A DNA stretch of 64,000 nucleotides from Cyanophora paradoxa CCMP329 (GCA_004431415.1 QPMI01000637.1:1-64000), one strand, 5' to 3'. Shown: positions 1 to 19,500, counted from the first letter of the stretch. The notes: generated by a model not told the origin, from the letters alone. Program-made: numbers and translations.

Positions 1-2143
1 CCCCTGCCGACAGCCACGGAGGTGCCTGACGCGCCCCTACCCCCTTGAACTCTCCCCCTCACCCGGGTACAGCTCAAGTCGGAGATCGCGCGCGTCGTGA
101 CGGCCCTCCAGGCCCAGTCCGCCGCGTGCGCCCGCGAGCCCCTCCTCCCCCCGCCCCCCTCCCCCTCCCCCCCCCCTCTCACCCTCCCGGCAGGGGCTCG
201 GAGCTGCCGGAGGACTTTGTGGAGGAGCTGGTGCGCTCCTGCCAGGGCCTCTCCCTCGACCGCGTCCGCAAGGTGCGCCCTTCGAGGCGAGGGGGGAGGA
301 GCCGCGGGGGTGCACGCGGCCGACCTGACGGCGCTCGCCCAGGTCCTCTCCCGCGCCCTGGCGACGCACGGCTCCATCCGCGTGGAGGCGCGTACCCCTT
401 CGCCCTCCCCCCCCCCCCCCCCCCCCCCCCGAGCGTTGCGGCAGGACCTGGACATGATCCTGGAGGAGAAGCGGCAGCTGATCCGCCAGACCCAGATCCT
501 CGAGTACGTCCCCACCTCCGCCGAGGTCCCCGCCCCTCCCCCGCCCGCCTCCACCGCCGCCCGCGCTCCTAAGAGCCCCACAGCTGGACGACATCGGCGG
601 CCTCGAGAACCTGAAGGAGTGGCTCGTCACCCGCGAGAAGTCCGCGTACCCCCCTCTCCCCCTTCCCCCTCCCGTGGCCGACGGCCCTCCGCAGTGCCTT
701 CAGCGACGCCGCCCGCGCCTACGGGTGGGCCCGCCTACCCCCCGCCCCACCTCGACCCCCGCCCCCCACCTCCCCTCCCCCCCCCCCCCCCCCCCCCCCC
801 CCAAGGCTGCCGTTCCCTCGGGGCCTGCTGCTGGTGGGGGTGCAGGGGACGGGCAAGTCCCTCTCCGCCAAGGCCATCGCCCACCGCTGGCCCGCCCCGT
901 TCCGCCCCGCCTCGGCCCGCCCCGCCTGACCCTCCTGCAGGCGGCTGCCGCTGCTGCGGCTGGACGTGGGGCGGCTCTTCGGGGGCGTCGTCGGCGAGTC
1001 CGAGGCCCGCACCCGCCAGATGATCCAGGTGCGAGTCCCGTGCGGGGCGACCCAGGCGTGCTCGGCGGGGCCCGACCCCCCCGCAGACCGCCGAGGCCCT
1101 CGCCCCCTGCATCCTCTGGATCGACGAGATCGACAAGGCCTTCTCGGTGCCCCCGACCCCGCCCTCCGGCGCTGCCTACCGCATCCTCACGCGCCCGCCC
1201 GCAGGAGAAGTCCCGCGGCGGGGACGGGGGTACCGCCTCCCGCGTCTTCGGCTCGTTCATCACGTGGCTCGGCGAGAAGAACTCCCCGGGTACCCCGATT
1301 CTCTTCCTCCAATCGGCCCGGGCCATTTCGAGCGCGGGGCGGGGGTACGCACACGCGCGCAGTGTTCGTGGTGTCGACGGCGAACCAGGTGCAGACGCTG
1401 CCGCCCGAGCTCCTCCGCAAGGGCCGTTTCGACGAGGTACCCCCCAAACATATCCCCCCCCTCGCGCCCTTAAATCCCTCCCCCATCCCAGGTCTTCTTC
1501 GTAGGCCTTCCCAGCGAGCGCGAGCGGTGCGCCCTGCGGGGGGGGGGGGGGGGGGGGCGCGAGTCGTGAGGCCGCCCCGCGTTGAATCGGGGGTACAGGC
1601 GCGCCATCTTCGAGGTCCACCTCCGGAAGCTGCGCCCCGAGCGGGTGCGCCGGTACCCCCTCGCCGCCGCGCCCCGGGCGGGGGCCGAGGGGGTACGCAG
1701 CTGCCGGAGTTCCGGCTGGACGAGCTGGCGGCGCAGACGCCCGAGTTCTCGGGCGCTGAGATCGAGCAGCTCATCATCGAGGGCGCGCCCCCGCCCCGCC
1801 CGCCCCGCCCCCGGGTCTCGGCGCGCGTACGGCCCTGACGGGGGGCGTGGGGGGGCGGGGGGCAGCGATGCACGTGGGGTTCACGCAGGGGCGCGAGTTC
1901 ACGACGGAGGACGTGCTCGACGCGATTCGCGACGCCGTGCCCCTCGCCCGCACCGCCCGCGAGGAGATCGGTCCGCCCCCGGTCCCCCCACGCCCGCGCC
2001 GGCGGCTGACCCTCGCGGGGCCGGCAGGCGAGCTGGAGACGTGGGCGGCCTCGGGGCGGGCGCGCCTCGCCTCGCGCCGCGTCGCCAGGTCGACCCCCGC
2101 CGACGAGCGCAGGAGCCCCAAGGCCGACACCCCCGACGAGTAG
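1..2143 (+). CDS. ycf46: Ycf46-family AAA+ ATPase, multi-exon, 5' end outside the window
   Basis: Spliced exons give LVRSCQGLSLDRVRK..ILEEKRQLIRQTQILEY..DIGGLENLKEWL, Walker A GLLLVGVQGTGKSLSAKAIA, LPLLRLDVGRLFGGVVGESEARTRQM, Walker B CILWIDEIDK, TANQVQTLPPELLRKGRFDE and FSGAEIEQ. These match cyanobacterial/red-plastid Ycf46 as I recall the family. TAG at 2141-2143. Confidence 0.9.
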
Positions 2144-2819
2144 ACGCCTCTAGATCTGGTAGATCAAGACGCCTTCATATTGCAATTGCAAGACGGGCCC
2201 CCGCGCCGCGCTGCGCCGGGAACTCGCGATACCACTTGATATTATGTAATTTGAAAACACGAACGTCGATGACGAGGTCACGCGTATACGTATGCCGCCC
2301 CCCGCCGCGCCTCCATCCCGGCTGCAGCTGCCCGGCCTGGCGAGCTCGAGCTCGAGCCGCGCGCGCGTCCCGCAGCAGACTCCCGCTCCGCGGCCGCGGC
2401 CGCAAGCTAATTGCTAAAGAACGGACCTCCTGCGCTGCTAGGCTGCGCATGCACGCCGTTGCACGGTTGAAGCACCGCGAATTTTGAGTCTGAAAAGACT
2501 TAAAAGCACGAACGTCAACGTCAACGAAACGGCCGTCATTGCGGACGTGTAGGGTGTACCCCTCTGGTACCCGCTTCTTCGGAATCGGAGGTGCCATGGT
2601 CACGCGGCCGCGGCCGCGGCGGCCCGCGGCTCACGCCTGCCAGGCTGCGGTATGCCAAGCACTGCCAGTCGAGTCGGGAATTCGAAGTCCAGCCCTGTAG
2701 TGGCTGCTGCCGCGGTTAGCTACTAGGATAGGATAGGTAGAACGAGCCGCAGCGGTCTTGATCGCGCTCGCGGGCGCATTTGAAGTGCGCGCTCGTAGGG
2801 GCCACGCAGCGTGGGCAGA

Positions 2820-5402
2820 ATGGCGGACGACAGCCGCTCGCCGCTGCTGAGACCGCGGCCTGGCCATGGGCTCGGGCCCGACGCAGCAGCTGAGCTCGAG
2901 CGCCGGTACTCCAAGCTGTCGAGCAGCGCGGTCGGCGGCGGCGCGTCGGACTTGCCTCCCATCCGCGTGCTCTCCATCGGTGCGCCCGCGCTCGCGCCGG
3001 CGCCCGCGACCAGATCAGCCGAGCCCATATCCGGCCCCGCGCCGCTCTATGCGGGCCCTAACCGTTAAACCGCCCGTACGCTTGCCGCAGATGGAGGAGG
3101 AGGTGATCTTCCCCCGTCCTCGCCTGCGCCGGCCCGCGCTGACGCGCGCCGCGCGCCGGCGCCGCGCAGCCAAGGGCATCATCCCAGCGAAGCTCATCGA
3201 GTGCGGCCTCGCGATCGCCCGCGCGCCCGACGCGCCGTCGCCCCTGCCTGACGCCCCGCTCGCCCAGGTACATCTCCGCGAGGGCGGGGCGGGTGCGCGC
3301 GCGCACGGAGCCCCGCGGCCGCGCAGCGCCGGCTGGGGCCGTTGAGCGCGCACTCGGCCGCGCCTCACGCGGGGCCTGTGCCGCCCCGCGCGCGCCGCAG
3401 CCGATTCACGAGCTCTTCGACGTCGTCGCCGGTGCACCGCACAACCGTCGGCGCGCCCGTGGGCGGCCCCCTGCGTCCGGCTGACTGCGCGAGCGCGGCG
3501 CGGGGGCCGGGGGCGCAGGGACGAGCGCGGGGGCGCTCATCGCCGGCGCCTGCTTCGGGCTCCGCGACGGGAGGCCCCTCATCCCCGCCGAGAGCCTGGC
3601 CCGCCCGGCCCCAGCCCCCCGCCCCTCGCGCCCGACCGAACGAGCGGGGCCGCGCCCGCGCAGGTCGCCACTTTGATGAAGAAGTGGATACAGGCGTTCC
3701 CGAGCTACTCCGCGCCCGTCGCCCTCGCCCGCGCCATCCGCGGGCCCATCTTCAGCGACGTCCGTACCCCCCGCGATGGAGCCCCGTACCCCTCCTTCGC
3801 ATGAGACCCGTACCCCCAGAGCACCGTCCTCGGAATCCTCAAAGAGTTCGGCGGAGACTGCCGCCTCGCCGACACCGGCGCCTTCCTTGTGGTACCCTCG
3901 AAGTCCCCGGCCCGTATCCTGTACCCCCCCCTTTACCTCGATTGCACCCCCCCTTCCCCCTCCCCGCAGATCCCGACCTACGATATCGAGGAGAGATGCC
4001 CGGTCTACTTCTCGACGGTGACCATGAGCGGCGTGTGCGTACCCCCCTGGGACGCCACCCCCAACGCGTGGGGCCTTCGCAGTCGCAGGCGCTGGCGGAC
4101 CCCGACGCGCACAACTTCCTGCTCCCCGACGTCGTCCACGTGCGCTCGTACCCCTCACGTGGAAGCCTCGCCCCCGCCCCGCGCACATGACGCGGCGCCG
4201 GGGGCCGGGGCGGGCAGGCGGCGGTGGCGGCGCCGGCGATCCTGGCGCCGGTGCGCCTCCACTGCCCGGGCGTCTACGCCCACAAGGACTACAGCACCTT
4301 CGTCGACGGCTGGTGCGCGGCCTCGGTCCCCGCCCGTCGCCCCTCGCCCCTCGCTCCCCTCAGAGCGCCCCGGCAGCCTCACACAGAACAACCCGGCGCT
4401 GATCGCTCACGCCGAAGCATCCCGCCTCTTCCCGGGTACCCCGGGGGAGGGGGGGGGGGGCGACGCCCCGAGATCGCCCCGCGCGCTCTAATCGGCGGCA
4501 CCTGCACCCCAGGGCGGAGGATCCTGATGGTGTCGCTGGGCACCGGCTCGGCCGACGTCCCCATGAAGCGCGCCCGCCGCACCCCCGCCCCTCGCGATCC
4601 ATCCCAGACCCCGCTCCTGCGCCCTCACTTGACGCGCGCGCCGCAGCTCGCAGGCCGCGAGCAGGTGGAACGCGTTCAAGTGCGCCGCACCCTCCTCGAG
4701 AGCTCGTCCTCGGGCGCTGACGGGCCGCATCAGGTGGCTCGTCCCAGCGATCGAGTGCATGCTGGACGGTGAGGCAGAGACCCGCGCCCCTCTGCGCTCG
4801 AGCCGAGCTCGAAGCGCGACGCGGCCCGACCCGCCCGCAGGCACGGGCGACTGCGCGACGGACCTGGCGAGCCGCCCGCGGGCCTCGCCTGGCCTCGCCT
4901 CCCCGGTTCTCACGCGGGCGCGGGGCGGCAGGCGGAGAGCCTCCTCGGGGACAACTTCATTCGCCTCTCCCCGCGCCTCCCTCCCGGCCTCGACAGGTCC
5001 CCGCCCCGCGAGCTCTGCTCACCCCAACCGTCTCACCGCCCCTGCGCAGCGTGGCGGACGCGCGGCCGCAGCAGCTGCAGGCGCTCTGCCGCACCGTCGA
5101 GAAGCAGGCCCGCCCCGCCTTGTGCGGCCCCGGCCCCTCCCCGGAGCTGACCCCGCGGGGGCGGGCGGCAGCTGCTGAGGGGCGAGCCGAAGCGCCGCCT
5201 CGACGCCTTCATCGAGCGCCTCGTGGCCGCCTCTGACCACCCGCGCGCCCTCCCCCGCCCCTCCCCCGCCCTCCTGCCCCCGGTGCCGCTGCTCCCACCC
5301 CGAGGCCCTCGAAGGGGACAGAGGCGGGGGCTCATCACGCCGTCCGCCCAGGACTTCGTGGTCGTCCCGAAGCAGCCCGCCGTCGGCTCCCAGCCGGCCC
5401 AG
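2820..5402 (+). CDS. Patatin-like phospholipase A domain, multi-exon; probably the N-terminal part of a fusion with the downstream ABCG transporter (stand-alone stop would be at 5480)
   Basis: ATG at 2820. Spliced motifs: IRVLSI-DGGG-AKGII (oxyanion loop, with DGGG on a 12-nt micro-exon at 3091-3102), LFDVVA-GTSAG-ALIA (catalytic Ser), FVDG-SLTQNNPA (catalytic Asp) and ILMVSLGTG. Confidence 0.88.
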
Positions 5403-5493
5403 GTGCCCGCCCCCGCCGCTTCCGCTGATCGCATAGCGTGCTTCGTCGCGCCGCGTCGACGTCGCGGGGTCGACGTCTGAGCCGCCGGCCCAG

Positions 5494-8400
5494 GTCTTGT
5501 CGGACATCGAGACCTACGGCACCTGCCACCTCACGTTCGGTCCGGCGCCATTTGTGTAATTTTGGCACGGTCAACGGCGAGCGGGCGCTGGCATCGATTG
5601 CAGACAACGCGAGCTTCTCGGTGAAGGAGGCGCCGCCGCCGCTGCATGCACAGGGCGCCGCGGAGAGGGCCCGCAAGGCCGGCGCCGCGCTGGCGAGGCG
5701 CGCCCGCCGCCCGCTGGCCCCGCCCCGCCCTCGGCTCGCGCCTGACGCCGCGGACAGGAGCGTGAGCGAGAGCATCGGGCTGGTCAAGCACTGGCGCCAC
5801 GTCCTCGCCCCCATCTCCGGCGAGCTCCGCGTGCGCACCCCCGCCCCGGGCCCGCGTCGCACCCCCCGCCCCCCTCCCCGCCCCCCCCCCCCCCCCCCCC
5901 CCCCCCGCCGACGCCGACGCCGCCGCCGGCAGCCCGGCACGATGACCTGCGTCCTCGGCCCCGCTTTCTCCGGCAAGGTCCGCCGCCTCATTGCAGCAGC
6001 TGCAAAACGCAGCGGCGCGCGCGGCGCCTCGCTCCGGCATCTACTCAAACGCCGCGCAGACGGCGCTGCTGCAGATCCTCGCAAACCGCGACGAGGAGCT
6101 GCGGCGGGCGGGGCGCGTGGGCGGGGCCGTGCGGCTCAACGGGGCGCCAGCGCGCAGCAGCGCGGCCTTCGCGCGGCGCGTCGTGCTCGTCCGACAGGAC
6201 GACGCGAGCCACTACCGTGCGCTGCGAGCGCTGTTCGCACTCAGGCGCCTGGAGCCGCCCCGAGCCGGAGGCGGGGCGCAGCGCAGCTGACGGTGGAGGA
6301 GGCGCTGAGCTTCGCGGCGCGGATGAGGCGGCCGAGCGGGGGCGAGCGGGACGCGGCGGACGTGCGGGACGCGCACGCGATGACCCTCACCGCCGCCATG
6401 GTCGTCAACCTCGTCCAGGCCCGCCCCGCACCGCCCCCCGCCCCTCCGCCCCCCGCCCCCCTGCCCCGCCGCTTCGCGCTCCGCTGCTCGGTTGGCAGAG
6501 CCGTGCGCGTGCGCGCAGGCGATGGACTCGCTGGTGGGGGACCAGAACGTGCGGGGCATCTCCGGCGGGGAGAAGCGCCGCCTCACCGTCGCCGTCGAGC
6601 TCGTCGCGGCGCGCCCTCTGCCCCGCCCCCGCCCCCGCCCCCCGCGAGCGCCCCCCCTGGCCCCGGCTCACGGGCCCCGCAGGGCGGTAAGGGCGTCGTG
6701 CTGCTGGACCAGCCCACGGACGGTGCGCGCAGGGGGCCCGCCCGCCCGGTCTCCAGCTCATCCCCTGACCACGCCGGCAGGGCTCGACGCGGCGGCCAGC
6801 CTGGACCTATGCAGGGCCCTCCGCAGCCTCGCCGAGTCCGGCGTCGCCGTCATCTGCTCCCTCCTCCAGCCCTCCTGGTGCGCCCACGCGAAGGCACCTC
6901 TCCAGCGGCTGCTGAGGCGGGGCGCGGGCGCGCAGGGAGGTCTACAGCCTGTTCGACGAGCTCATCCTCCTCGCCCCGGGCCGCTGCGTCTACCAGGTCC
7001 GATCCCCCCTTCCATTCATGTCCACCCGCCTTCGTCCGGCGTTCGACGGCGCGCGTGCGAGCAGGGACCGGGCGGCCTCGCCCCCGTCCGCCACTTCGAG
7101 GGGCAGGGGCTCAAGAACGTCGACGCTCTCAGCCCGCCCGTGCGCCACGGATCAGGAGCCGATCGCGGACCGCTGCGTTGCGCCTCTGTCGCTTATCGGG
7201 CCTCAGGACTTCCTCGTCTCGGTCGCGTCGACGGGCCGCGCGCAGCTCGCCACGTCGCTCTCTTCCAGCGACGCCCGGGTGCGCAGAGGGCCGGCGCCTC
7301 CATCGTCCATTTCGTCGATTTCAAGCCCTGAGGCGCCTCGCGCTTCATCGGCCGGCGCCGCAGGTGGCGCTCAAGGTCGAGCCCACACGCGCTCCCCTCT
7401 TCGATGAGGACCCGAGGGCGCCAATCGCGAGGTGCTTCCGCGTCTCCCGCCCTCCCGCAGCCGAGCCGCCGCTGACCACGCCGTGGCCGGCCCTTGCGCG
7501 CGCCCCGCCGCAGCCGAGCGCCTCCCGCGGGCGCCCTCGTGTCCGCCTCCAGCGTCGACCTCAACGTCGCCCCCGAGGCGAGGCCCCGCGGCGTCGCCTC
7601 CCCCGCGCGCGCCCGCGCTGACGCCGCCGGCGCAGATCGACCTGCAGCGCCAGTACGCGGCGCCCGCCAAGAAGCAGGTGCGAGCTCGGCCGCTGGCCTC
7701 CGGGCGCCGCCAGCGCTCAGGCGGGGCGGGGCGGGGCGCGCGCAGTTCGACATCCTGTACGAGCGCTTCAACACGCTGCTCTTCCGGAACCGGCGGCCCC
7801 TCATCTCCCGCACCGTCCAGTCCCTCGCCATCGCTTTCATTCTTGGAACCCTCTTCTGCCAGGTGCCTATTAATATTCCGCCCAGCCCGCTCCCGCCCCC
7901 GCCCGGCCCCTCTTCGCCCCCTCGCCTTGTTCTCCAATTTTAACCCGGCGCCAGATGCCGGCGACGGCGAGCGGCGCGGTCAACCGCATCTCCTTCCTGC
8001 AGGCGCGCGCGGGCGGGGCAGTGCCGAGGGCGCCGCCGCCCGAGCCGCGCGGGTCTCACGCGGGCCCCGCGGGCCGGGCGCCGGCAGGCGTGCCTCCTCG
8101 TGTACGCCTTCATGGCCCTCTCCAAGGTCCCCGGGCCCCGCGCGCCGCCCCCGAGCCCGAGGCGGACCGGGCTCGAGCCCCAGCTGACGTCCGCTGACGC
8201 CCGCCGGCGCAGATCGACATCAACTACGAGAACCGGCGGGTGATGCACGCGCAGACGCAGGAAGGCGCCTACCGCCCCGAGCTCGTGCGCCCCGGCCCCG
8301 AGCTCGCATCCACTCCCGCCCGGCCCCGACGCCGACGGGCGCTGGGGCAGTGGCTCGCGGCGAACGTCGCGTCGGAGGTCCCCCGCCTCTTCGTCGAGGT

Positions 8401-11400
8401 GCCCCCGCCCCGCGATCCTCTTCCCCGCTCGCAACCGCCCGCGCCGGATCCTCATCGGCGCCGGCGATCCCAGGTGACCCTCTTCTCGCTGGTGGCGTAC
8501 CACGCCGCCGGCCTCCAGGTCGTCGCCACGCACCAGCGCTTCGCCCGCTTCCTCCTCGTCCTCTTCCAGGCCCGCCCCCCCGCCCCCTCGCCGGCTCCGG
8601 CGCGAGCCCGGGCGGCCGCGTCGCTCACGGGGGCGTGGTGCGCGCGGGCGCAGATGTCGCTCGTCGCCGACGCCTCCGTCCTCGCCCTCTGCCAGGTCTT
8701 CGCCGTCCGCGAGGTCCGCGGGGCGGGGGCCCAGGCTCCGAGTCGATTTAATTTCGCACTGTGACGCGCCTCGCGTTGCGGCAGGTCTGCTCCTCGCTGG
8801 CGCCCATCCTGCCGGCCCTTTCGTTCATCTTCGGCGGCTTCGTCGTGCCGCGCCCCTCGCTGCCCTCCTGGTGGAAGTGGGCCCGCTACTGGTCCTACTT
8901 CTCCTACCCCCACGAGGCCCTCTGCCTCAACGGTGCCCCCCACGCCCCGCCCCGCCCTTCGCGCTCTGACGGCGCCGGGGGGGCGGGCAGAGCTGTGGGA
9001 CCTGGCGGTGGACGGGCGCCCGGGGGGCGGCGCCGCCGTCCTCGAGGCCTTCGGCATGAGCGCCGACCCCGCCTGGTACTGGTGCGAGGGCCCCCGCCCC
9101 CGCCCCCGCCCCGCTTCATTAAGTTCTTCTCGGCCGCTGCCCGGCTGATCCCCGGCAGGTACAACGTGCTCATCTCCCTCGCCTACTGGCTCGCCTGGCT
9201 CGCCGCGGCGCTCCTCGGGGCGCGCTTCTCGCGGCCGCGGCGCGCCTTCCCCTCCGTCATGGGCGCCGACGCCCACGCGCACGCCCCGTCGCCGTCGCCG
9301 CCTCCGGAGGGCGAGGGCGCGTGGAAGGCGCCCCCGGCGCCGGCGCCGGCGGAGCTGGAGATGCGGTCGCGGGGCGCGGCGGGCAGCGCGGGCGAGGGCA
9401 TGCTGGTGCACGTGGTGACGGTGGAGCGGGCGCACGGGGCGGGGGGGCTGGAGAGCCCGGGCCACGGGCAGCCGCGCGCGGCGGCGCTCACCTTCCGCGG
9501 CCTCTGCTACGACGTCCCCGCCGAGCGCCCCGGCGCGCCCCTCCGGCCGGCGACTCGCCCCGCCTCGTCTTCTTCTGACCTTCCGTGCAGGGGAGCCGCC
9601 TCGGCGTCTGCTGGAGAACGTGTCGGGCTTCGTGCGGGGCGGGGGCCTGACGGTCCTCATGGGGGCCTCCGGGGCGGGCAAGACGACGCTGATCGACGTG
9701 CTGGCGGGCCGCAAGACGACGGGCACCGTCACCGGCGAGATCCGGCTCAACGGGCGCCCGCTGCCCCCCAACGGCGCCTTCGCCCGCGTCTCGTCGTACG
9801 TCGAGCAGTTCGACCTCCTCTTCCCCACCATGGCCCGCCCCCGCCCCCGGCCCAAGCCCCCTCGCCCAGCTGAGGGCGGCCTCAGACGGTGCGGGAGGCG
9901 GTGGTCCTCTCCGCGATGGTCCGCCTCGACGCCGCCGTCCCCCGCCGCGAGAAGCTCGCCGCCGTCCGCCCCCGCCCCCGCCCCCCGCCTTCTCTCTGCG
10001 AGCGTCTTTGAGGCGCGCCTCCGCGGCGGGCCGGGCAGGCGGAGTGGGCGCTGCGGGAGCTGGACCTGGAGGCGGCCGGCGGGCTCGTCATCGGCACCCT
10101 CGAGGCCGGCGGCATCCCCGTCGAGGCCCGCCCGCCCCCGGCCCCGGCCCCGGCCGGGCCCGCGCGGCGGCGGGCGGCCTGAGGCGGGGCGGGCCGGGGG
10201 CGGCAGATGCGGAAGCGGACGTGCATCGCGATGGAGCTTGTCCCGCGGCCCCACGTCCTCTTCCTCGACGAGGCGCCCCGCCTCCCTCGGCCCCCCGCGC
10301 CCCGCCGCCCCTCACGCCCCGGCCCGGGCCCCACAGCCGACCACGGGCCTCGACTCCACCGCCGCCCTCCGCGTCGGCAAGGCGAGCCAGCGCCCCGGCC
10401 CCGGGGCCGGGCCCTCGCTCGCCTGACGGCCCCGGGCAGCTGCTGCGCCGCATCGCGAGCGGCGGGCAGGCCACCGTCGCCACCATCCAGTGCGCTTGCG
10501 CGGGGCGCCCGCGCCGCCAGCTGCGGCTGACGGGCGGCGGGGCGGGGGGGGGCGCAGCCAGCCGTCGCAGCCGCTCTTCGCCCTCTTCGACTACCTGATC
10601 CTCTTGAAGCGCGGCGGCGTCCCCGTCTTCTGCGGCGCGCCCCCGCCCCCGCCCCCGGCGGCTCGCGGGCGCTGCGGCGGCTGCGGCTGACGAGGCCGCA
10701 GGGGAGCTGGGGGAGCGCTGCTCCGGGGTCCTCGCCTTCTTCGCCCAGCTCGGCTCGCCCCCGGCCCCCTCTGCAGACCCCGGGGCTCGCTGAAGTTGAC
10801 GCGCACCCGCAGGCTACGACCTCCCGCCCTTCCGCAACCCCGCCGACTTCGTCATCGAGGTCCGGAAGCAGAGATTCGAACATCAATCGAGGCCTGCAAC
10901 CTCTTAGCTCGTCGTTCGGCGGCGCAGACGGCCGGGGGGCGGTCAGGGCGGCGGGCGGCGGGCCAGGCGGCGCCCCGCGCGACGCCCTCCGTCTCCGTCC
11001 TCTCCGAGGCCGCCGCCGCCGCCGCCGCCGCGCCGCCCTCGCGCACCCGCATGAACCGTGCCGCCGAGGAGATCGCCGCCCAGTTCAAGGCGCGCCCCGT
11101 CCCGCCGCACTCGCATTCAACGTTGCCGGCTTGAATCTGACTCCGGGGCTCGCGCGCAGGCGAGCCCGCTGGCCGCGACGCTGCAGGCGCAGCTGTCGGA
11201 GCTCGAGGCCAGCCGTGCGCCCCTCCCCTCAGCTCTCGAGGCTGCACCGCCCCCTGGGCCCCTGCTGACCCCGCCCCGCCCCGGCCCCCGCCCAGTGTCG
11301 GCCCAGGAGGCGCCCCGCATCCCCCAGCGGCCGGGCTTCGCTCGCCAGGTTGGCCCGCCCCCGCTCCGCGCTCCACACTCGCCCAACTTCGCGCCGCGCC

Positions 11401-13102
11401 CCGGCGGCAGGTGGCGCTGCTGGTGGGCCGCAAGGCGCGCTGGCTCGTGCGCGAGCGGCAGCGCTTCTGGGTCAGCGTCCTCAGGCGAGCGCCCTCCCCT
11501 GCCCGCCTCCAGCGCGCCCCCGCTCGGCCTGAGGCCCTTGGACCGCAGCAACCTGCTCGTCGCCCTCATCGCCGGCACCACCTGGTGCTTCACTTCCCGC
11601 CTCTCTTCCTCCGCCTTGCGCCCCCCCTTCCCCCTCCCCCCTCTCCCATGCCCCACCCCCTCCTTCCGCCCCTCCCACCGCCCCCGTCCCCCCCCCCTCC
11701 CCCCTCCTTCGAGCGTGCGGCGTGGGGGCAGGTACCAGCTGGGGCTCGACCAGCCCTCCGCCCGCCTCCGCCTCTCCGCCATGTACTGCATGTGCGCGCC
11801 GCCCCCGCCCGCCCGCCCGCATCGCCTGCCGCTGAGCGCGCGAGGCGCCGTGCAGAACCCTCTACTTCTACTTCCGGTCCGCCTCGCCCGCTCCGGCCCG
11901 CTCCGGGCCGCTCCGAGATGACGGCCTCGCCCCGCTCGTGCAGGGCGATCGGCGACATCACGAGCCACTGCGCCCTCCGCGAGGTCTACTACCGCGAGCG
12001 CGCCCAGGGTCCGACTCCCCCCGCCATGTGTGCCGGAGCCGGGCCGGGCTGCGGCGCCCTGACCACCGCTGGCCCCCCGCGGCCCGCAGGCCTCGTCAGC
12101 CCCATCGCCCACCAGGTACCACGATGCACACCCCTCCACGAGTGATCCGTGTACCTGGAGCTCATCCCCCCCGGCAGGCGTCCAGCCTCATCGTGATGAC
12201 GTCGTTCCACGTGCTCAACGCCATCGCCTTCGTCGCCATTGCGTACCCCCTCTGCGGGTTTCAACTCCAGGGGTACGCGCACGGCCCGCTCGCGCGCTTC
12301 TTAAAGACATCACTCGCCACCCGGCGCGCAGGCGGATGGGGTACGCGGTGCTGCTGGCGTGCCTCTGGACGCTCGTCAACAGCGCCTTCATTGAGTTCCT
12401 CGCCCTCGCCCTCCCGGTACCCCCCAACCCTCTCCCCTCCCCCCGCCCTCCCTCGACCCAAGTGGGCCGCGCTGCAGATCCCGCCGGTGGTCTTCTCTGT
12501 CGCATCCGCCATTCTCGCCTGTGGCGCCTTCTTCACCGGCTTCATGGCGCGTTTCCACGCCCCGCCCCGCCCCGCCACGCGCCCCCCGCTTGCTCTGACT
12601 CGCCGCAGATCTCGGGCTCGGACATCCCGCGGCCCTGGATCTGGTTCTTCTACCTCCTCTGGTTCCGGTGACCCCGCCAGCCTCGCGGCCCCGGACCCCC
12701 CTCACGCCCCGTCGGACCAGGTACCCCTTCGAGGGCCTGGCCGCGAACGAGCTCTCGAACATCGCGTTCGCGGGCTGTCCCCCCCAGTGCGCGCGCATCG
12801 TACCCCCTTCCAATCCCCCCCACCCCCGGCCCCGCGGTCGCGACCCGCGCCACCCGCAGGGCGGCCGCGGCGGGGCTCTGCTTCCCGACTGGCGCGGCCG
12901 TCCTCGCCCGCTACGACCTCAGCCCCGACCGCCAGGTCCGCCTTCCTTTCATCCTCGCCTAGAGCGCCCGGGCTCCAGATCTCCGCGAGGCTGAGGGGGC
13001 GGGGCGCAGTGGGCGAACCTGGGGATCCTGGCGGCCTTCTGGGCCGCCTTCGAGGCCGGCAAGGCCCTCGCCCTTCACCGCATCACCCACCTCCGCCGCT
13101 GA
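5494..13102 (+). CDS. Full-size ABCG/PDR-type ABC transporter (NBD-TMD-NBD-TMD), many exons
   Basis: NBD1: [40 protein letters not shown]1 includes [25 protein letters not shown]2: [42 protein letters not shown]2 includes [18 protein letters not shown]. Ends [11 protein letters not shown] at 13100-13102. Confidence 0.93.
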
Positions 13103-16530: not shown

Positions 16531-19500
16531 ATGTCTACGTACGATAACGTTAGATCTCGATCAGCGCGATCGCTTCACCGGGCTTCCCCCAAAGCCTCCG
16601 TCCTTTTCACGACTGCAGCTGCCCTCACGATCATCGCCGTTCTCTGTCTCGCATGCCATGTCTCGGCCGTGGTGGTCACGGAGGTGAAGTGGGGCGGCCT
16701 CTACGACAGCGTCAATGACGAGTTCCAGCCGGTGGCTGGCTTCGTCGCCGATGCCAACGTCGGCTCGGTCGGGCCCGGGCAGGTGCGCAGGCGCTTAAAG
16801 CATAAGATGATCGAGAAGCGGTTCAACGGCCGCGGTTTCAGCAATGAATGCGCCTACAGCCGCGCAACTCGGCGTCATCTGCCGTATTAAAGTTAATCAT
16901 GCATAGCATATGATCATGACCATATGCATTTTGCGTGCAGCACAAGCTCCCATCTTCGGGCGAGACGCTGAAAGTCCAGTTCTCCGATGGCGGCGGCACC
17001 CACATCGTCCTGTGCGCATGCGCGACTGTATATGTGCCGCAGTGCTCGCCTTCGATCGCGAGATGCCGGGCACGTGCTCGCGCGTGCATGTCTGACCTGC
17101 GCCGGCCCGTACTCATCTGCAGGAGCACGATGGCGACCACCGGGTTCACGGCGGGCACTGCCCCCGACAGCAACAACGGATGGATCAGATTTCGGTTCAC
17201 GAGTGGACCCGCAAAGAAGGGGCACGAGATGGATATGAACAATCAGAGTAAATGCAAGATGGGGCTGTCCTTCTTCGGCGAGGATTCCACGAAGTGCAGG
17301 CTGACCGATGTGCCCGATCCCGTCGCGTACATCTGCGGCGTCGTGCGTCTCACGTTTGAATATGCTTCTGCTTACGTCTACGATGCATCTGACCACGACG
17401 ACCTCCCAGGAAATCGTGGCGGGGCGGGACGACGGGAACGACAACACGGACCTCAAGATCGACGTCGTCTTCCAGAACTACCAGAACCAAGCATACAACC
17501 CGTACACGAGCGCCTCCAACGGCATCCCGAACCCGCCCTTCGTCCTTGGCACCATCGACCTGTCAGCGGCCACGAAGGCTGACCCAGTCAAGTGCGTTCG
17601 CCGATCGTGATCCGCAAGCTTGCAATTGATTCTGCCGCTCACTATCCGCGCGTTAGCTTCACGAGAACCCAGGCGGACTTCCCCGTCATCGACGACTACC
17701 TCACCTCGTCGAGCCAGGATGGCGGTCAGCAGGCATACTCGCAAACGCGCACTGGCGTGAAGGGTGGCCTCCGCGGAGCCTACTCCGGATCCGCCTTGGG
17801 GACGTGGGGGCTCTGGCTCTTCCCCTACGGTGCGCTGTCAGTGGATGCAAGATCTGTAATTATACCTCGGATGCTCCTGGGGTACCGGTGCTGATTGTGC
17901 TGCCTGGACGGTGCGCTTTCCACCAGGACCCGGCGCTGCGATGACGCAGAAGATCGCAATCGACCACGTCAAGCTCGACATCCGCTCCTGCTCGACCTGC
18001 GACTGCGTGCCGACCCCGGCGCCTTCCCCGACGCCATCCCCGTCTCCGACGCCGAGGCCGGAAGTGAAGTGGGACGGCCTGTTCGACAGCGTCAACGACG
18101 AGTTCAAGCCAACAGACTCTGTTCCACCGGCAAGCGTGACGTCCGTCGGTGTTGGCGCGGTGCGCTCAATAATATAATGTATAAGTTTCCTGTCAGATTA
18201 GGTTCAAATTCGGATTCGGTCTTGAATGCGATATCGATTTGCATGCAGCGCAAATTTCTGGCGGTGGGCGAGACTTCGAACATCGAGCTCTACGATGGTG
18301 GCGGCACCCACATTGTCATGTACGCACCTACAGCTTGCAATTGCAGGCGGCTGCAGCTGTGTGATTGTGCATTTCATGACTTTGTACACACCCGCAGGGG
18401 CTCTTCGGCGACCTCCGGCTTCACGGCGGGCACCAACCCCGAGAACAACAACGGATGGATCAGATTCCTGTTCACGAGTGGACCCGCAAAGAAGGGGCAC
18501 GAGAAGGATATGAACAATCAGAGTAAATGCAAGATGGGGCTGGCTTTCTTCGGCGAGGATACTACGAAGTGCAGGCTGATCGATGTGCCCGATCCCGTGG
18601 CGTACATCTGCGGCGTCGTGCGTCTCACGTTTGAATATGCTTCTGCTTACGTCTACGATGCATCTGACCACGACGACCTCCCAGGAAATCGTGGCGGGGC
18701 GGGACGACGGGAACGACAACACGGACCTCAAGATCGACGTCGTCTTCCAGAACTACCAGAACCAGAACTACAACCCGTACACGAGCGCCTCCAACAGCAT
18801 CCCTAGCACCCCCGTCGTTGTCGGCACCATCGACCTGTCAGCGGCGACGAAGGCCGATCCGGTCATGTGCGTTTCCTGAACGTTAACTATAACGTGCACG
18901 TGTTTATGCCATGATGGTCATACGCATGATCCGCAAGCTTGCAATTGATTCTGCCGCTCACTATCCGCGCGTTAGCTTCACGAGGACCCAGGCGGACTTC
19001 CCCGTCATCGACGACTACCTCACCTCGTCGAGCCAGGATGTCGGCCAGCAGGCATACTCGCAAACGCGCACTGGCGTGAAGGGTGGCCTCCGCGGAGCCT
19101 ACTCCGGATCAGGCTTGGGGACGTGGGGGCTCTGGCTCTTCCCGTACGGTGCGCTATCATTGCAATTGGATACAATCGCAAGATATGTAAGTATAACTCA
19201 GCTGCTCCTGGGGTACTGATTGTGCTGCCTGGACGGTGCGCTTTCGATCAGGAGTCGGTGCGGCGAAGACGGAGAAGATTGCGATCGACTACGTGGAGCT
19301 CGACATCCGCTCCTGCTCGACCTGCGACTGCATCGAGGGCCCTGCTGTATCCGAAGCTCAGATTGCCGAGCCTTCCCCTTCGCCTACACCTGATTCAGAA
19401 GCGAGCGCTCCATATACGCCGACACCACACCCTAATCCGATTGACGAATCAGAAGCGTCCTTCACGCCGCGTCCGGATCCGCCAAGCGCGACCCCTACGC

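Follow-up and report, generated by a model that had tools for sequence, protein, structure and literature searches.

On the plus strand of a 64,000-nucleotide stretch of the genome of the glaucophyte Cyanophora paradoxa (the window), a patatin-like acyl hydrolase and a full-size ABCG/PDR pump are, with a probability that we put at roughly 0.8, encoded as one spliced protein and represent a real fusion. The locus spans 10,283 letters, from an ATG at 2820 to a stop codon behind the second membrane domain at 13100-13102. It would be a single gene whose transcript begins upstream of 2700 and is translated between these two points, with about 70 short introns taken out, among them one at 5403-5493 that carries a stop codon of the patatin frame. 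Removal of this intron would link Gln423 in phase to Val424 of an ABCG/PDR transporter of the order NBD1-TMD1-NBD2-TMD2. The product appears, according to the splice model, to be about 1,750-1,800 residues long. At its N-terminus would stand an acyl hydrolase of the patatin type, cytosolic and with both residues of the Ser-Asp dyad (Ser103 and Asp234) present. A Pro-rich, probably disordered linker of about 100 residues would follow, and then the pump, of the asymmetric PDR type, in which one ATP site is degenerate and the other canonical.

The RNA support comes from assembled contigs of three runs from two studies (X1, X2 and X3; Logan, 31-letter words), which lack the introns at 14 listed joints. 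Contigs of this kind are blind to transcript ends, strand and isoform ratios, and they drop rare variants. When the exons consistent with the RNA are joined in a script, they yield 2,850 nt, or 950 codons, between 2820 and 8569, and these form a single open reading frame with zero stops.

The patatin part

The patatin-like acyl hydrolase part, together with the Pro-rich linker, occupies 2820-5402 and consists of 18 exons (1269 nt, 423 codons) that end in phase 0 and are covered by spliced contigs of all three RNA runs. The first nine exons lie at 2820-2979, 3091-3102, 3170-3267, 3401-3431, 3519-3556, 3664-3759, 3820-3891, 3970-4017 and 4083-4139, and the remaining nine at 4218-4312, 4377-4435, 4513-4567, 4647-4679, 4734-4768, 4841-4866, 4932-4996, 5050-5107 and 5172-5402. 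Down to 4311 the exon lengths match the contig coordinates exactly (genome positions 2700, 3663 and 4218 correspond to contig positions 122, 580 and 854), and beyond this point the exons were set by splice sites and frame and give a stop-free translation.

The motifs of patatin-like enzymes are intact and stand in canonical order and spacing: DGGGAKG, GTSAG, VDGC..NNP and SLGTG. The oxyanion-hole motif IDGGGAKG (residues 53-60) is pieced together from exon 1, a micro-exon of only 12 nt at 3091-3102 and the exon at 3170, and the micro-exon letters ATGGAGGAGG are found between 2979 and 3168 in all three RNA runs. About 48 residues past the oxyanion hole, the nucleophile motif GTSAG (residues 101-105, with Ser103) is encoded by the exon 3519-3556, whose length of 38 nt follows from contig arithmetic and whose donor is a non-canonical GG. 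The catalytic Asp block, FVDGC-LTQNNP with Asp234, is spread over two exons within 4218-4435, of which the block 4218-4311 is present in RNA contigs with zero letter differences. Its third residue is Cys, versus the Gly or Ala of D-G-[GA], and the Ser-Asp distance is 131 residues.

Taken at the level of motifs, these features point to membership in the patatin-like phospholipases (PF01734). Pfam and NCBIfam profiles gave zero patatin matches on exon pieces (4 to 32 residues each) or on multi-exon stop-free stretches, and searching the window by tblastn with RssA and YjjU of E. coli returned only noise, with the best HSPs outside the gene. Zero matches likewise came from PDB searches with the GTSAG exon and one NBD1 exon, from a tblastn search of plasmids with two patatin stretches of several exons each, and from an ESM Atlas look-up.

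The junction between the two parts

The last patatin exon, 5172-5402, reads LLRGEPKRRLDAFIERLVAAS and contains the C-terminal helix LDAFIERLVAAS, followed by a Pro-rich linker stretch of about 54 residues that ends in QPAQ at 5402 (GC3 0.96 and 0.91, respectively). The first-pass annotation had described this passage from patatin into linker, with a GT donor at 5403 and a CAG at 5491-5493 that would render the TGA at 5478-5480 intronic, and each of these elements is confirmed on the sequence. They delimit a GT-AG intron of 91 nt at 5403-5493, with its GT at 5403-5404; the patatin frame is open up to 5402 and, if unspliced, stays open to the TGA at 5478. A dynamic-programming proposal of a further intron inside the linker, at 5223-5321, was dropped, as an unbroken exon fits both the lengths of the patatin contigs and the depth in bin 5064-5260.

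Downstream of the junction intron, the exon at 5494 begins VLSDIETY. The same annotation had placed its end at 5518, ahead of a GC-AG intron at 5519-5603, and here it has to be revised, as the RNA contigs put the donor at 5540. The corrected exon 5494-5539 is followed by a GT-AG intron at 5540-5603, which adds seven codons (GTCHLTF) and leaves the frame unchanged, while the next exon (5604-5697), the GC-AG intron at 5698-5757 and the exon from 5758 are as had been claimed.

Third-position GC content marks the linker (0.91) and the exon 5494-5539 (1.0) as coding and the junction intron (0.70) as non-coding. This contrast, the fact that the junction intron moves the patatin frame exactly to the ABCG frame, and the run of stop-free codons through the RNA-consistent exon set together argue that the fusion is more than a product of chance.

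The junction intron is flanked by a direct repeat of the 12-mer GCCGGCCCAGGT, at 5393-5404 and 5484-5495. Positions 5484-5493 repeat 5393-5402 letter for letter, this 10-mer occurs at only these two sites in the window, and position 5483 differs from 5392. In all three RNA runs the leftmost listed block of the ABCG contig starts at 5484 (joint 5538/5603, side 55), which, with the identity of the 10-mer and the mismatch at 5483/5392, is the pattern predicted by a splice from 5402 to 5494. By record arithmetic the contigs extend a further 13 (X2), 46 (X1) and 58 (X3) letters upstream of 5484. If all of the depth in bin 5261-5457 is assigned to the ABCG contig, it corresponds to about 28 aligned letters for X2 and about 75 for X3, and this difference of 47 agrees with the 45-letter difference in contig reach, as would fit if the upstream letters lie in the last patatin exon. 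From the block ends, the unique 10-mer and the depth arithmetic we infer the joint 5402|5494, which is absent among the 15 of 44 joints that are listed. One listed joint, 4231 to 5625 (side 21, depth 30), is probably a cross-match between low-complexity stretches and was set aside.

The exact 12-nt repeat at both ends of the skipped 91 nt raises the question of whether the junction is an artefact, either of a reverse transcriptase switching template between the copies of GCCGGCCCAGGT, which needs few bases, or of a de Bruijn collapse at the repeat. This is very improbable, as a 12-mer is unable to collapse a 31-mer graph, and the same block start recurs in three runs and two studies at full contig depth (14-16) rather than as a minor form. 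Moreover, the skipped segment has canonical GT-AG ends and a length typical of introns in this genome, and its removal gives an in-frame result between flanks with coding-type codon bias. On the DNA side, colinearity with the genome holds for run X10 also where it crosses the junction (5152-5681), so the assembly is sound at this place.

Zero contigs in X1, X2 and X3 span both the whole patatin part and the ABCG part. A low-complexity repeat is flagged at 5242-5274, and within it, at about 5249-5265, the patatin contigs end, while the ABCG contigs reach back to about 5335-5380, with starts that vary by run (about 5335, 5347 and 5380). About 70 nt of the shared exon are unbridged by the long contigs, the patatin ends lying some 70-130 nt ahead of the ABCG starts; zero contigs are listed in this gap, and the X2 depth leaves little room for a bridging one.

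This arrangement could be taken for a poly(A) site with a start site behind it, that is, for two adjacent genes with overlapping or read-through transcripts, in which the patatin mRNA keeps 5403-5493 and stops at the TGA at 5478, while the ABCG mRNA begins in the last patatin exon, uses a non-AUG start or the Met at 5942, and carries the spliced contig sequence as its 5' UTR. Genes lying end to end, many with overlapping UTRs, are indeed a property of the Cyanophora genome (PMC6704402). However, the low-complexity repeat is an expected break point for an assembly, and a patatin mRNA that ended near 5270 would lack a stop codon, the frame being open to 5478. The supposed 5' UTR has coding-type GC3 on both sides of the junction in exactly the frames that are joined, and the intron between them shifts the frame just as a fusion requires. 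The gap between the TGA and the exon at 5494 is only 13 nt, which counts for the fusion when set against a mean intergenic distance of 770 bp, in a genome where introns have a mean length of 86 bp (PMC6704402).

A separate ABCG gene would also lack a start. The earlier statement that there is no in-frame ATG between 5172 and 5942 stands, since within 5100-6000 the only ATGs are at 5646, which is out of frame, and at 5942, which is in frame and 8 residues ahead of the Walker A glycine. The ABCG part is hence without a usable ATG of its own, and a separate start would leave the conserved NBD1 strands ahead of Walker A (5758-5830) untranslated. Two genes are accordingly a distinctly unlikely explanation. 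The one polypeptide that had been proposed from sequence is supported by spliced contigs that reach back into the last patatin exon, the continuous reading frame, the missing ABCG start codon and the short gap, with the joint itself deduced as above.

A middle course would be that both forms are made, splicing leading to the fusion and retention to an untethered patatin of about 449 residues, terminated by the TGA at 5478, with the junction intron as a switch between a soluble and a pump-tethered lipase. With the intron retained, the message does read on in the patatin frame and meets a stop 26 codons later, and bins 5261-5457 and 5458-5654 are covered in X1 to a somewhat greater depth than expected from the long contigs. 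Against this, zero intron-containing RNA contigs are listed, among assemblies that lose rare variants, and the spliced contig of X2 accounts for nearly all of the depth in bin 5261-5457. We regard a dual output as a minority reading, doubtful yet deserving of attention; under the preferred reading, in which the fusion is the product, the 5402|5494 joint would be the main RNA form and the fusion protein would accumulate.

The ABCG/PDR part

Across 5494-13102 the coding segments follow one another in the order NBD1-TMD1-NBD2-TMD2, and by its sequence this part is a predicted full-size PDR-type ABCG transporter with the duplicated reverse topology. The pre-NBD1 segment and NBD1 lie within 5494-7000, where joints seen in RNA contigs were placed canonically and hidden joints were derived by contig arithmetic; the exons of this segment include 5494-5539, 5604-5697, 5758-5830, 5933-5977, 6060-6216, 6282-6418, 6519-6608, 6683-6722, 6781-6877 and 6936-6996. 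The NBD1 motifs are a Walker A, GPAFSGKT, at residue 507, a signature, ISGGEKRR, at about residue 620, and a Walker B, VVLLDQ, at residue 644, in which Gln replaces the catalytic Glu. An SGGE string at residue 580 (exon 6282-6418) is a chance match, the true signature residing in exon 6519-6608.

The first membrane domain, TMD1, is of the ABC-2 type (Pfam PF01061) and is placed at 7746-9260, with RNA joints up to 8569; the profile scores 33 bits at 8752-9870 (cut-off 26.9) and gives a weak match at about 7745-7875 to its positions 2-44. From 8569 onwards exons were taken from a free dynamic-programming splice model that recovered about half of the RNA-supported introns, and the model was used for this region and for rough domain limits only.

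NBD2, at 9480-10860, carries a Walker A, GASGAGKTT, a Walker B, VLFLDEPTTGLD, and a degenerate signature, GIPVEARKR; this second ABC motif set is located at 9599-10380, and ABC_tran (PF00005) scores 39.3 bits on 9419-10423 (cut-off 25). The best matches of the 75-residue exon 9599-9823 are the NBD2 of Cdr1 (E 1.8e-20) and of Pdr5 (E 1.3e-19), versus 1.6e-12 for the best half-size transporter, ABCG16, and about 1e-9 for ABCG5, ABCG1 and ABCG2. TMD2 and the stop codon occupy 11411-13102, with exon coordinates from the splice model only, and a weak PDR_CDR match at 12995-13099 (E 0.0085) is below the cut-off. At the level of single exons there were zero above-cut-off profile matches for NBD1 and TMD2. 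The two nucleotide sites are asymmetric, as the Walker B of NBD1 and the signature of NBD2 are degenerate, while the Walker A and B of NBD2 and the ISGGE signature of NBD1 are canonical.

Proposed function

Transporters of the ABCG/PDR type move lipids, sterols, wax and cutin precursors, and hormones, and to our knowledge the route by which such substrates reach the pump is mostly unclear. In the patatin-ABCG protein the tether would keep the lipase next to the pump, on the cytosolic side of the membrane, and fatty acids or lysolipids freed from glycerolipids might enter the ABCG membrane domains, to be exported or flopped. All of this biochemistry is read from sequence and is to be taken as a proposal. 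A lipase-pump fusion would reveal which reaction feeds a transporter and would offer a ready-made system for the study of enzyme-to-transporter hand-over.

Alternatively, the fusion may be real without the patatin feeding the pump, the domain being a lipid-sensing or regulatory module, or an independent membrane-anchored lipase. A disordered linker of about 100 residues imposes no fixed geometry and would allow for this, although the patatin part retains its Ser, its Asp and all of the glycines of the oxyanion hole, and we consider a non-feeding role unlikely. Broader, and put forward tentatively as a possible though not a favoured outcome, is the idea that glaucophytes possess a family of catalysis-coupled lipid exporters, in which a tethered active patatin cleaves glycerolipids of the cytosolic leaflet and passes the fatty acid or lysolipid directly to the lateral entrance of its own PDR pump, and in which intron retention could switch between free and tethered lipase. 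On this reading lipid deacylation and export would be one machine, with possible roles in membrane remodelling, in a surface or mucilage lipid layer, or in signalling lipids. There is also a consequence for annotation, in that gene predictors may split such genes at the intronic stop codon.

Comparison with known systems

The first-pass annotation held that this architecture was undescribed, and literature searches agree, the patatin-ABCG pairing being in no paper found. Neither the protein of this locus nor a relative of the same architecture was present in the protein and metagenome collections searched. Word-index protein searches with stop-free stretches containing ABCG or patatin exons gave zero matches, under a length filter that leaves out full-length ABCG or fusion proteins and with one query swamped by poly-Pro intron words. 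An exhaustive representative protein search with the 139-residue exon 9115-9531 as query gave two matches only, both to repetitive proteins that are unrelated. In metagenomes, a scan with the pre-NBD1 exons found zero relatives, and one with the NBD2 exon found 80 distant ABC loci with at most 63% identity (at most 54% for matches of at least 50 residues), none of the 80 having patatin motifs nearby.

With the full-size ABCG/PDR transporters, such as yeast Pdr5, Candida Cdr1 and plant ABCG36/PDR8, the locus shares the NBD-TMD-NBD-TMD order and the ABC-2 membrane domains, as well as an NBD2 exon that is closest to Cdr1 and Pdr5 and the PDR-type asymmetry, seen here as LLDQ in NBD1 and GIPVEARKR in NBD2. 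In Pdr5 the Walker A lysine of NBD1 is reportedly lost, whereas it is kept in the locus protein. The principal difference is the N-terminal enzyme domain of about 370 residues with its linker; described PDRs have, as far as we know and in agreement with literature searches, a short non-catalytic N-terminal extension only.

The patatin part resembles the patatin-like phospholipases, including potato Pat17, plant pPLAs and the animal iPLA2/PNPLA8-9 enzymes, in having DGGGxxG, GTSxG, DG..NNP and SLGTG in canonical order, a likeness at the level of motifs. In Pat17 the Ser-Asp distance is about 138 (Ser77/Asp215), against 131 at the locus. Unlike these enzymes, the domain described here would be covalently joined to a membrane transporter.

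ABC exporters that carry an enzyme are known from the peptidase-containing PCAT1 and from the peroxisomal ABCD protein Comatose with its acyl-CoA thioesterase activity. As in the proposed fusion, the cargo is prepared or released by hydrolysis, and this step is physically linked to ABC translocation. Yet PCAT1 and Comatose are members of different ABC subfamilies (type IV exporter fold, ABCB/ABCD) with other enzyme folds and substrates, and are analogues, not relatives, of the patatin-ABCG protein.

Gene layout

The locus at 2820-13102 on the forward strand is probably (at roughly 0.8) a real single gene, in which a linker of ~100 residues connects a patatin-type lipase with an ABCG pump of the full-size PDR type. 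All of its landmarks lie on the plus strand. From the patatin start ATG at 2820 the coding sequence reaches a last patatin exon at 5172-5402, which ends in QPAQ, and then crosses a junction intron (GT at 5403, TGA at 5478-5480, CAG at 5491-5493) into the first ABCG exon, 5494-5539, which opens with VLSDIETY and whose end is set by RNA joints. The Walker A motif of NBD1 lies downstream of the 5494 exons, reading GPAFSGK with the T supplied past the next intron, and the final coding segment closes with the stop at 13100-13102. Exon coordinates past 8569 come from a rough splice model made here, as does the 3' part of the exon set behind the total product length of about 1,750-1,800 residues.

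Very short exons and introns crowd the window, and G+C is 71-78% over the fusion gene vs 68% for the window as a whole. At the locus the median intron is 74 nt, exons are mostly <160 nt and genes stand in tandem, a structure that fits the published Cyanophora genome, with 9.2 introns per gene, a mean intron of 86 bp, a mean intergenic distance of 770 bp, and genes arranged end to end with overlapping UTRs (PMC6704402). An AAA+ ATPase gene of many short exons (480-2140, plus strand; motifs LDDIGGLENLKEW, GTGKSL, ILWIDEIDK and LDELAAQTPEFSGAEIEQL) lies in tandem upstream, ~600-700 nt from the patatin ATG, as against a gap of just 13 nt from the patatin 'stop' to where the ABCG exons begin. Further downstream, an identical translated stretch occurs at 17325-17477 and 18600-18752, ~1.3 kb apart (identical HSPs), apparently a local repeat or duplication.

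RNA and DNA evidence across the junction

Reads from four runs (X1, X2, X3 and X10) were aligned over 2700-8600, the assembled reads of each run being its contigs. The contigs of X1-X3, from two studies, leave out introns and these runs are therefore RNA, while those of X10 are colinear with the genome, which identifies it as DNA. The landmarks of the first-pass annotation were borne out on the sequence save for one exon end, 5518, where it had placed a GC-AG intron (5519-5603); RNA joints give 5539 and a GT-AG intron at 5540-5603, adding seven codons and leaving the frame as before. Its GC-AG intron at 5698-5757 was upheld by the RNA joints.

Only 15 of the 44 joints were listed and 5402|5494 was not among them, so that we infer it from block start, repeat and depth. 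In X1, X2 and X3 alike the left-most listed block of the ABCG contig spans 55 letters up to 5538 and hence starts at 5484; a contig without the splice would have aligned further left, and this start therefore speaks for splicing. The ten letters at 5484-5493 (GCCGGCCCAG) are the same as 5393-5402 and occur nowhere else in the 64 kb, and position 5483 is unlike 5392, so that a contig carrying the 5402|5494 splice has to align back exactly to 5484. Upstream of this block the contigs hold a further 46 (X1), 13 (X2) and 58 (X3) letters, counted from record coordinates and corrected for three masked letters at 5933-5935. If all depth in the bin 5261-5457 is credited to the ABCG contig, it amounts to ~28 letters in X2 and ~75 in X3, a difference of 47 letters vs the 45-letter difference in upstream reach, which fits a position of the upstream letters in the last patatin exon. 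Block start, unique 10-mer and depth together suggest that the splice is probably present in the RNA of three runs.

Both ends of the 91-nt junction intron carry an exact 12-nt direct repeat, GCCGGCCCAGGT (5393-5404 and 5484-5495), which may be a footprint of the origin of the intron or of the fusion. Such a repeat could also have given rise to the junction as an artefact, a reading we regard as highly improbable. One X10 contig spans 5152-5681 with zero differences, and the assembly across the junction is therefore sound. Other X10 contigs agree with the window only from 5448 on and carry different letters before it (...CCAATAAAGTCAGCGGCCCA), which points to a paralogue or an allele, a second genomic context in which the ABCG part starts.

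Reading frame

Exon ends were set so that lengths match contig coordinates (X1 anchors 2700=122, 3168=412, 3663=580 and 4218=854; ABCG-side anchors 6058=313, 6282=472, 6780=738, 7747=1219 and 8472=1540). On this basis the patatin part amounts to 1269 nt (423 codons), with phase 0 at 5402, and the exon set over 2820-8569 to 2,850 nt and 950 codons with zero stops, its introns being 29 GT-AG, 8 GC-AG and one GG-AG. The last of these types is intron 3557-3663, provided that the exon lengths derived from RNA contigs are right; its donor may be non-canonical, or the assembly may differ here from the strain that supplied the RNA.

GC3 reaches 0.91 in the Pro-rich linker (5241-5402), drops to 0.70 over 5403-5493 and rises to 1.0 in exon 5494-5539. 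A scan of 5100-6000 found ATGs only at 5646, out of frame, and at 5942, in frame and 8 residues ahead of Walker A, in agreement with the earlier claim that no in-frame ATG lies between 5172 and 5942; the strands ahead of Walker A are coding and reachable from the patatin-start ATG alone. The single patatin-ABCG polypeptide originally proposed thus gains support from a continuous frame across the putative joint and from the lack of an ATG proper to the ABCG part. In the unspliced form a TAG at 5434 closes the ABCG frame and no ATG follows it in that frame; an intron-retaining, patatin-only isoform alongside the fusion, with which it is compatible, is possible though rather doubtful.

The patatin contigs end, judging from their lengths, at ~5249 (X2) and ~5265 (X1), both within a flagged low-complexity stretch (5242-5274), and ~70 nt of exon 5172-5402 have no bridging long contig. 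We attribute this gap to assembly breaks at the low-complexity repeat, though it would also be compatible with two genes with overlapping transcripts, an unlikely arrangement. The same contigs include a 12-nt micro-exon at 3091-3102, read as ATGGAGGAGG between 2979 and 3168 in all three RNA runs, which encodes the patatin oxyanion-hole glycines and is likely to be missed by gene predictors.

Identity of the two halves

No relatives of the locus were found among word-index protein searches, an exhaustive representative search and metagenome scans. Intron 5831-5932, between the pre-Walker A strands and Walker A, is mostly a long C/G-rich homopolymer-like tract that would read as in-frame poly-Pro, and the poly-Pro from its translation swamped one of the word-based protein searches. 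No description of an ABCG transporter bearing a patatin domain emerged from the published literature searched, in keeping with the first-pass remark that the architecture is not known from any described family.

In the spliced frame the N-terminal half carries IDGGGAKG (residues 53-60), GTSAG (Ser103), FVDGC-LTQNNP (Asp234) and SLGTG (residue 263), in canonical order and spacing. A patatin profile search on the exon pieces gave no family score, and since pieces of 4-32 residues are too short for profile methods, the half is assigned as patatin-type at the level of motifs. A putative coupling of deacylation to export may reasonably be inferred.

The ABCG half, ordered NBD1-TMD1-NBD2-TMD2, scores above the Pfam cut-offs for both ABC_tran (39 bits) and ABC2_membrane (33 bits). 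Its 75-residue NBD2 exon best matches NBD2 of Cdr1 and Pdr5 (E ~1e-20), with half-size ABCGs behind, and the protein shares the asymmetry of PDR transporters, with LLDQ in NBD1 and a degenerate NBD2 signature, while the other site keeps canonical motifs.
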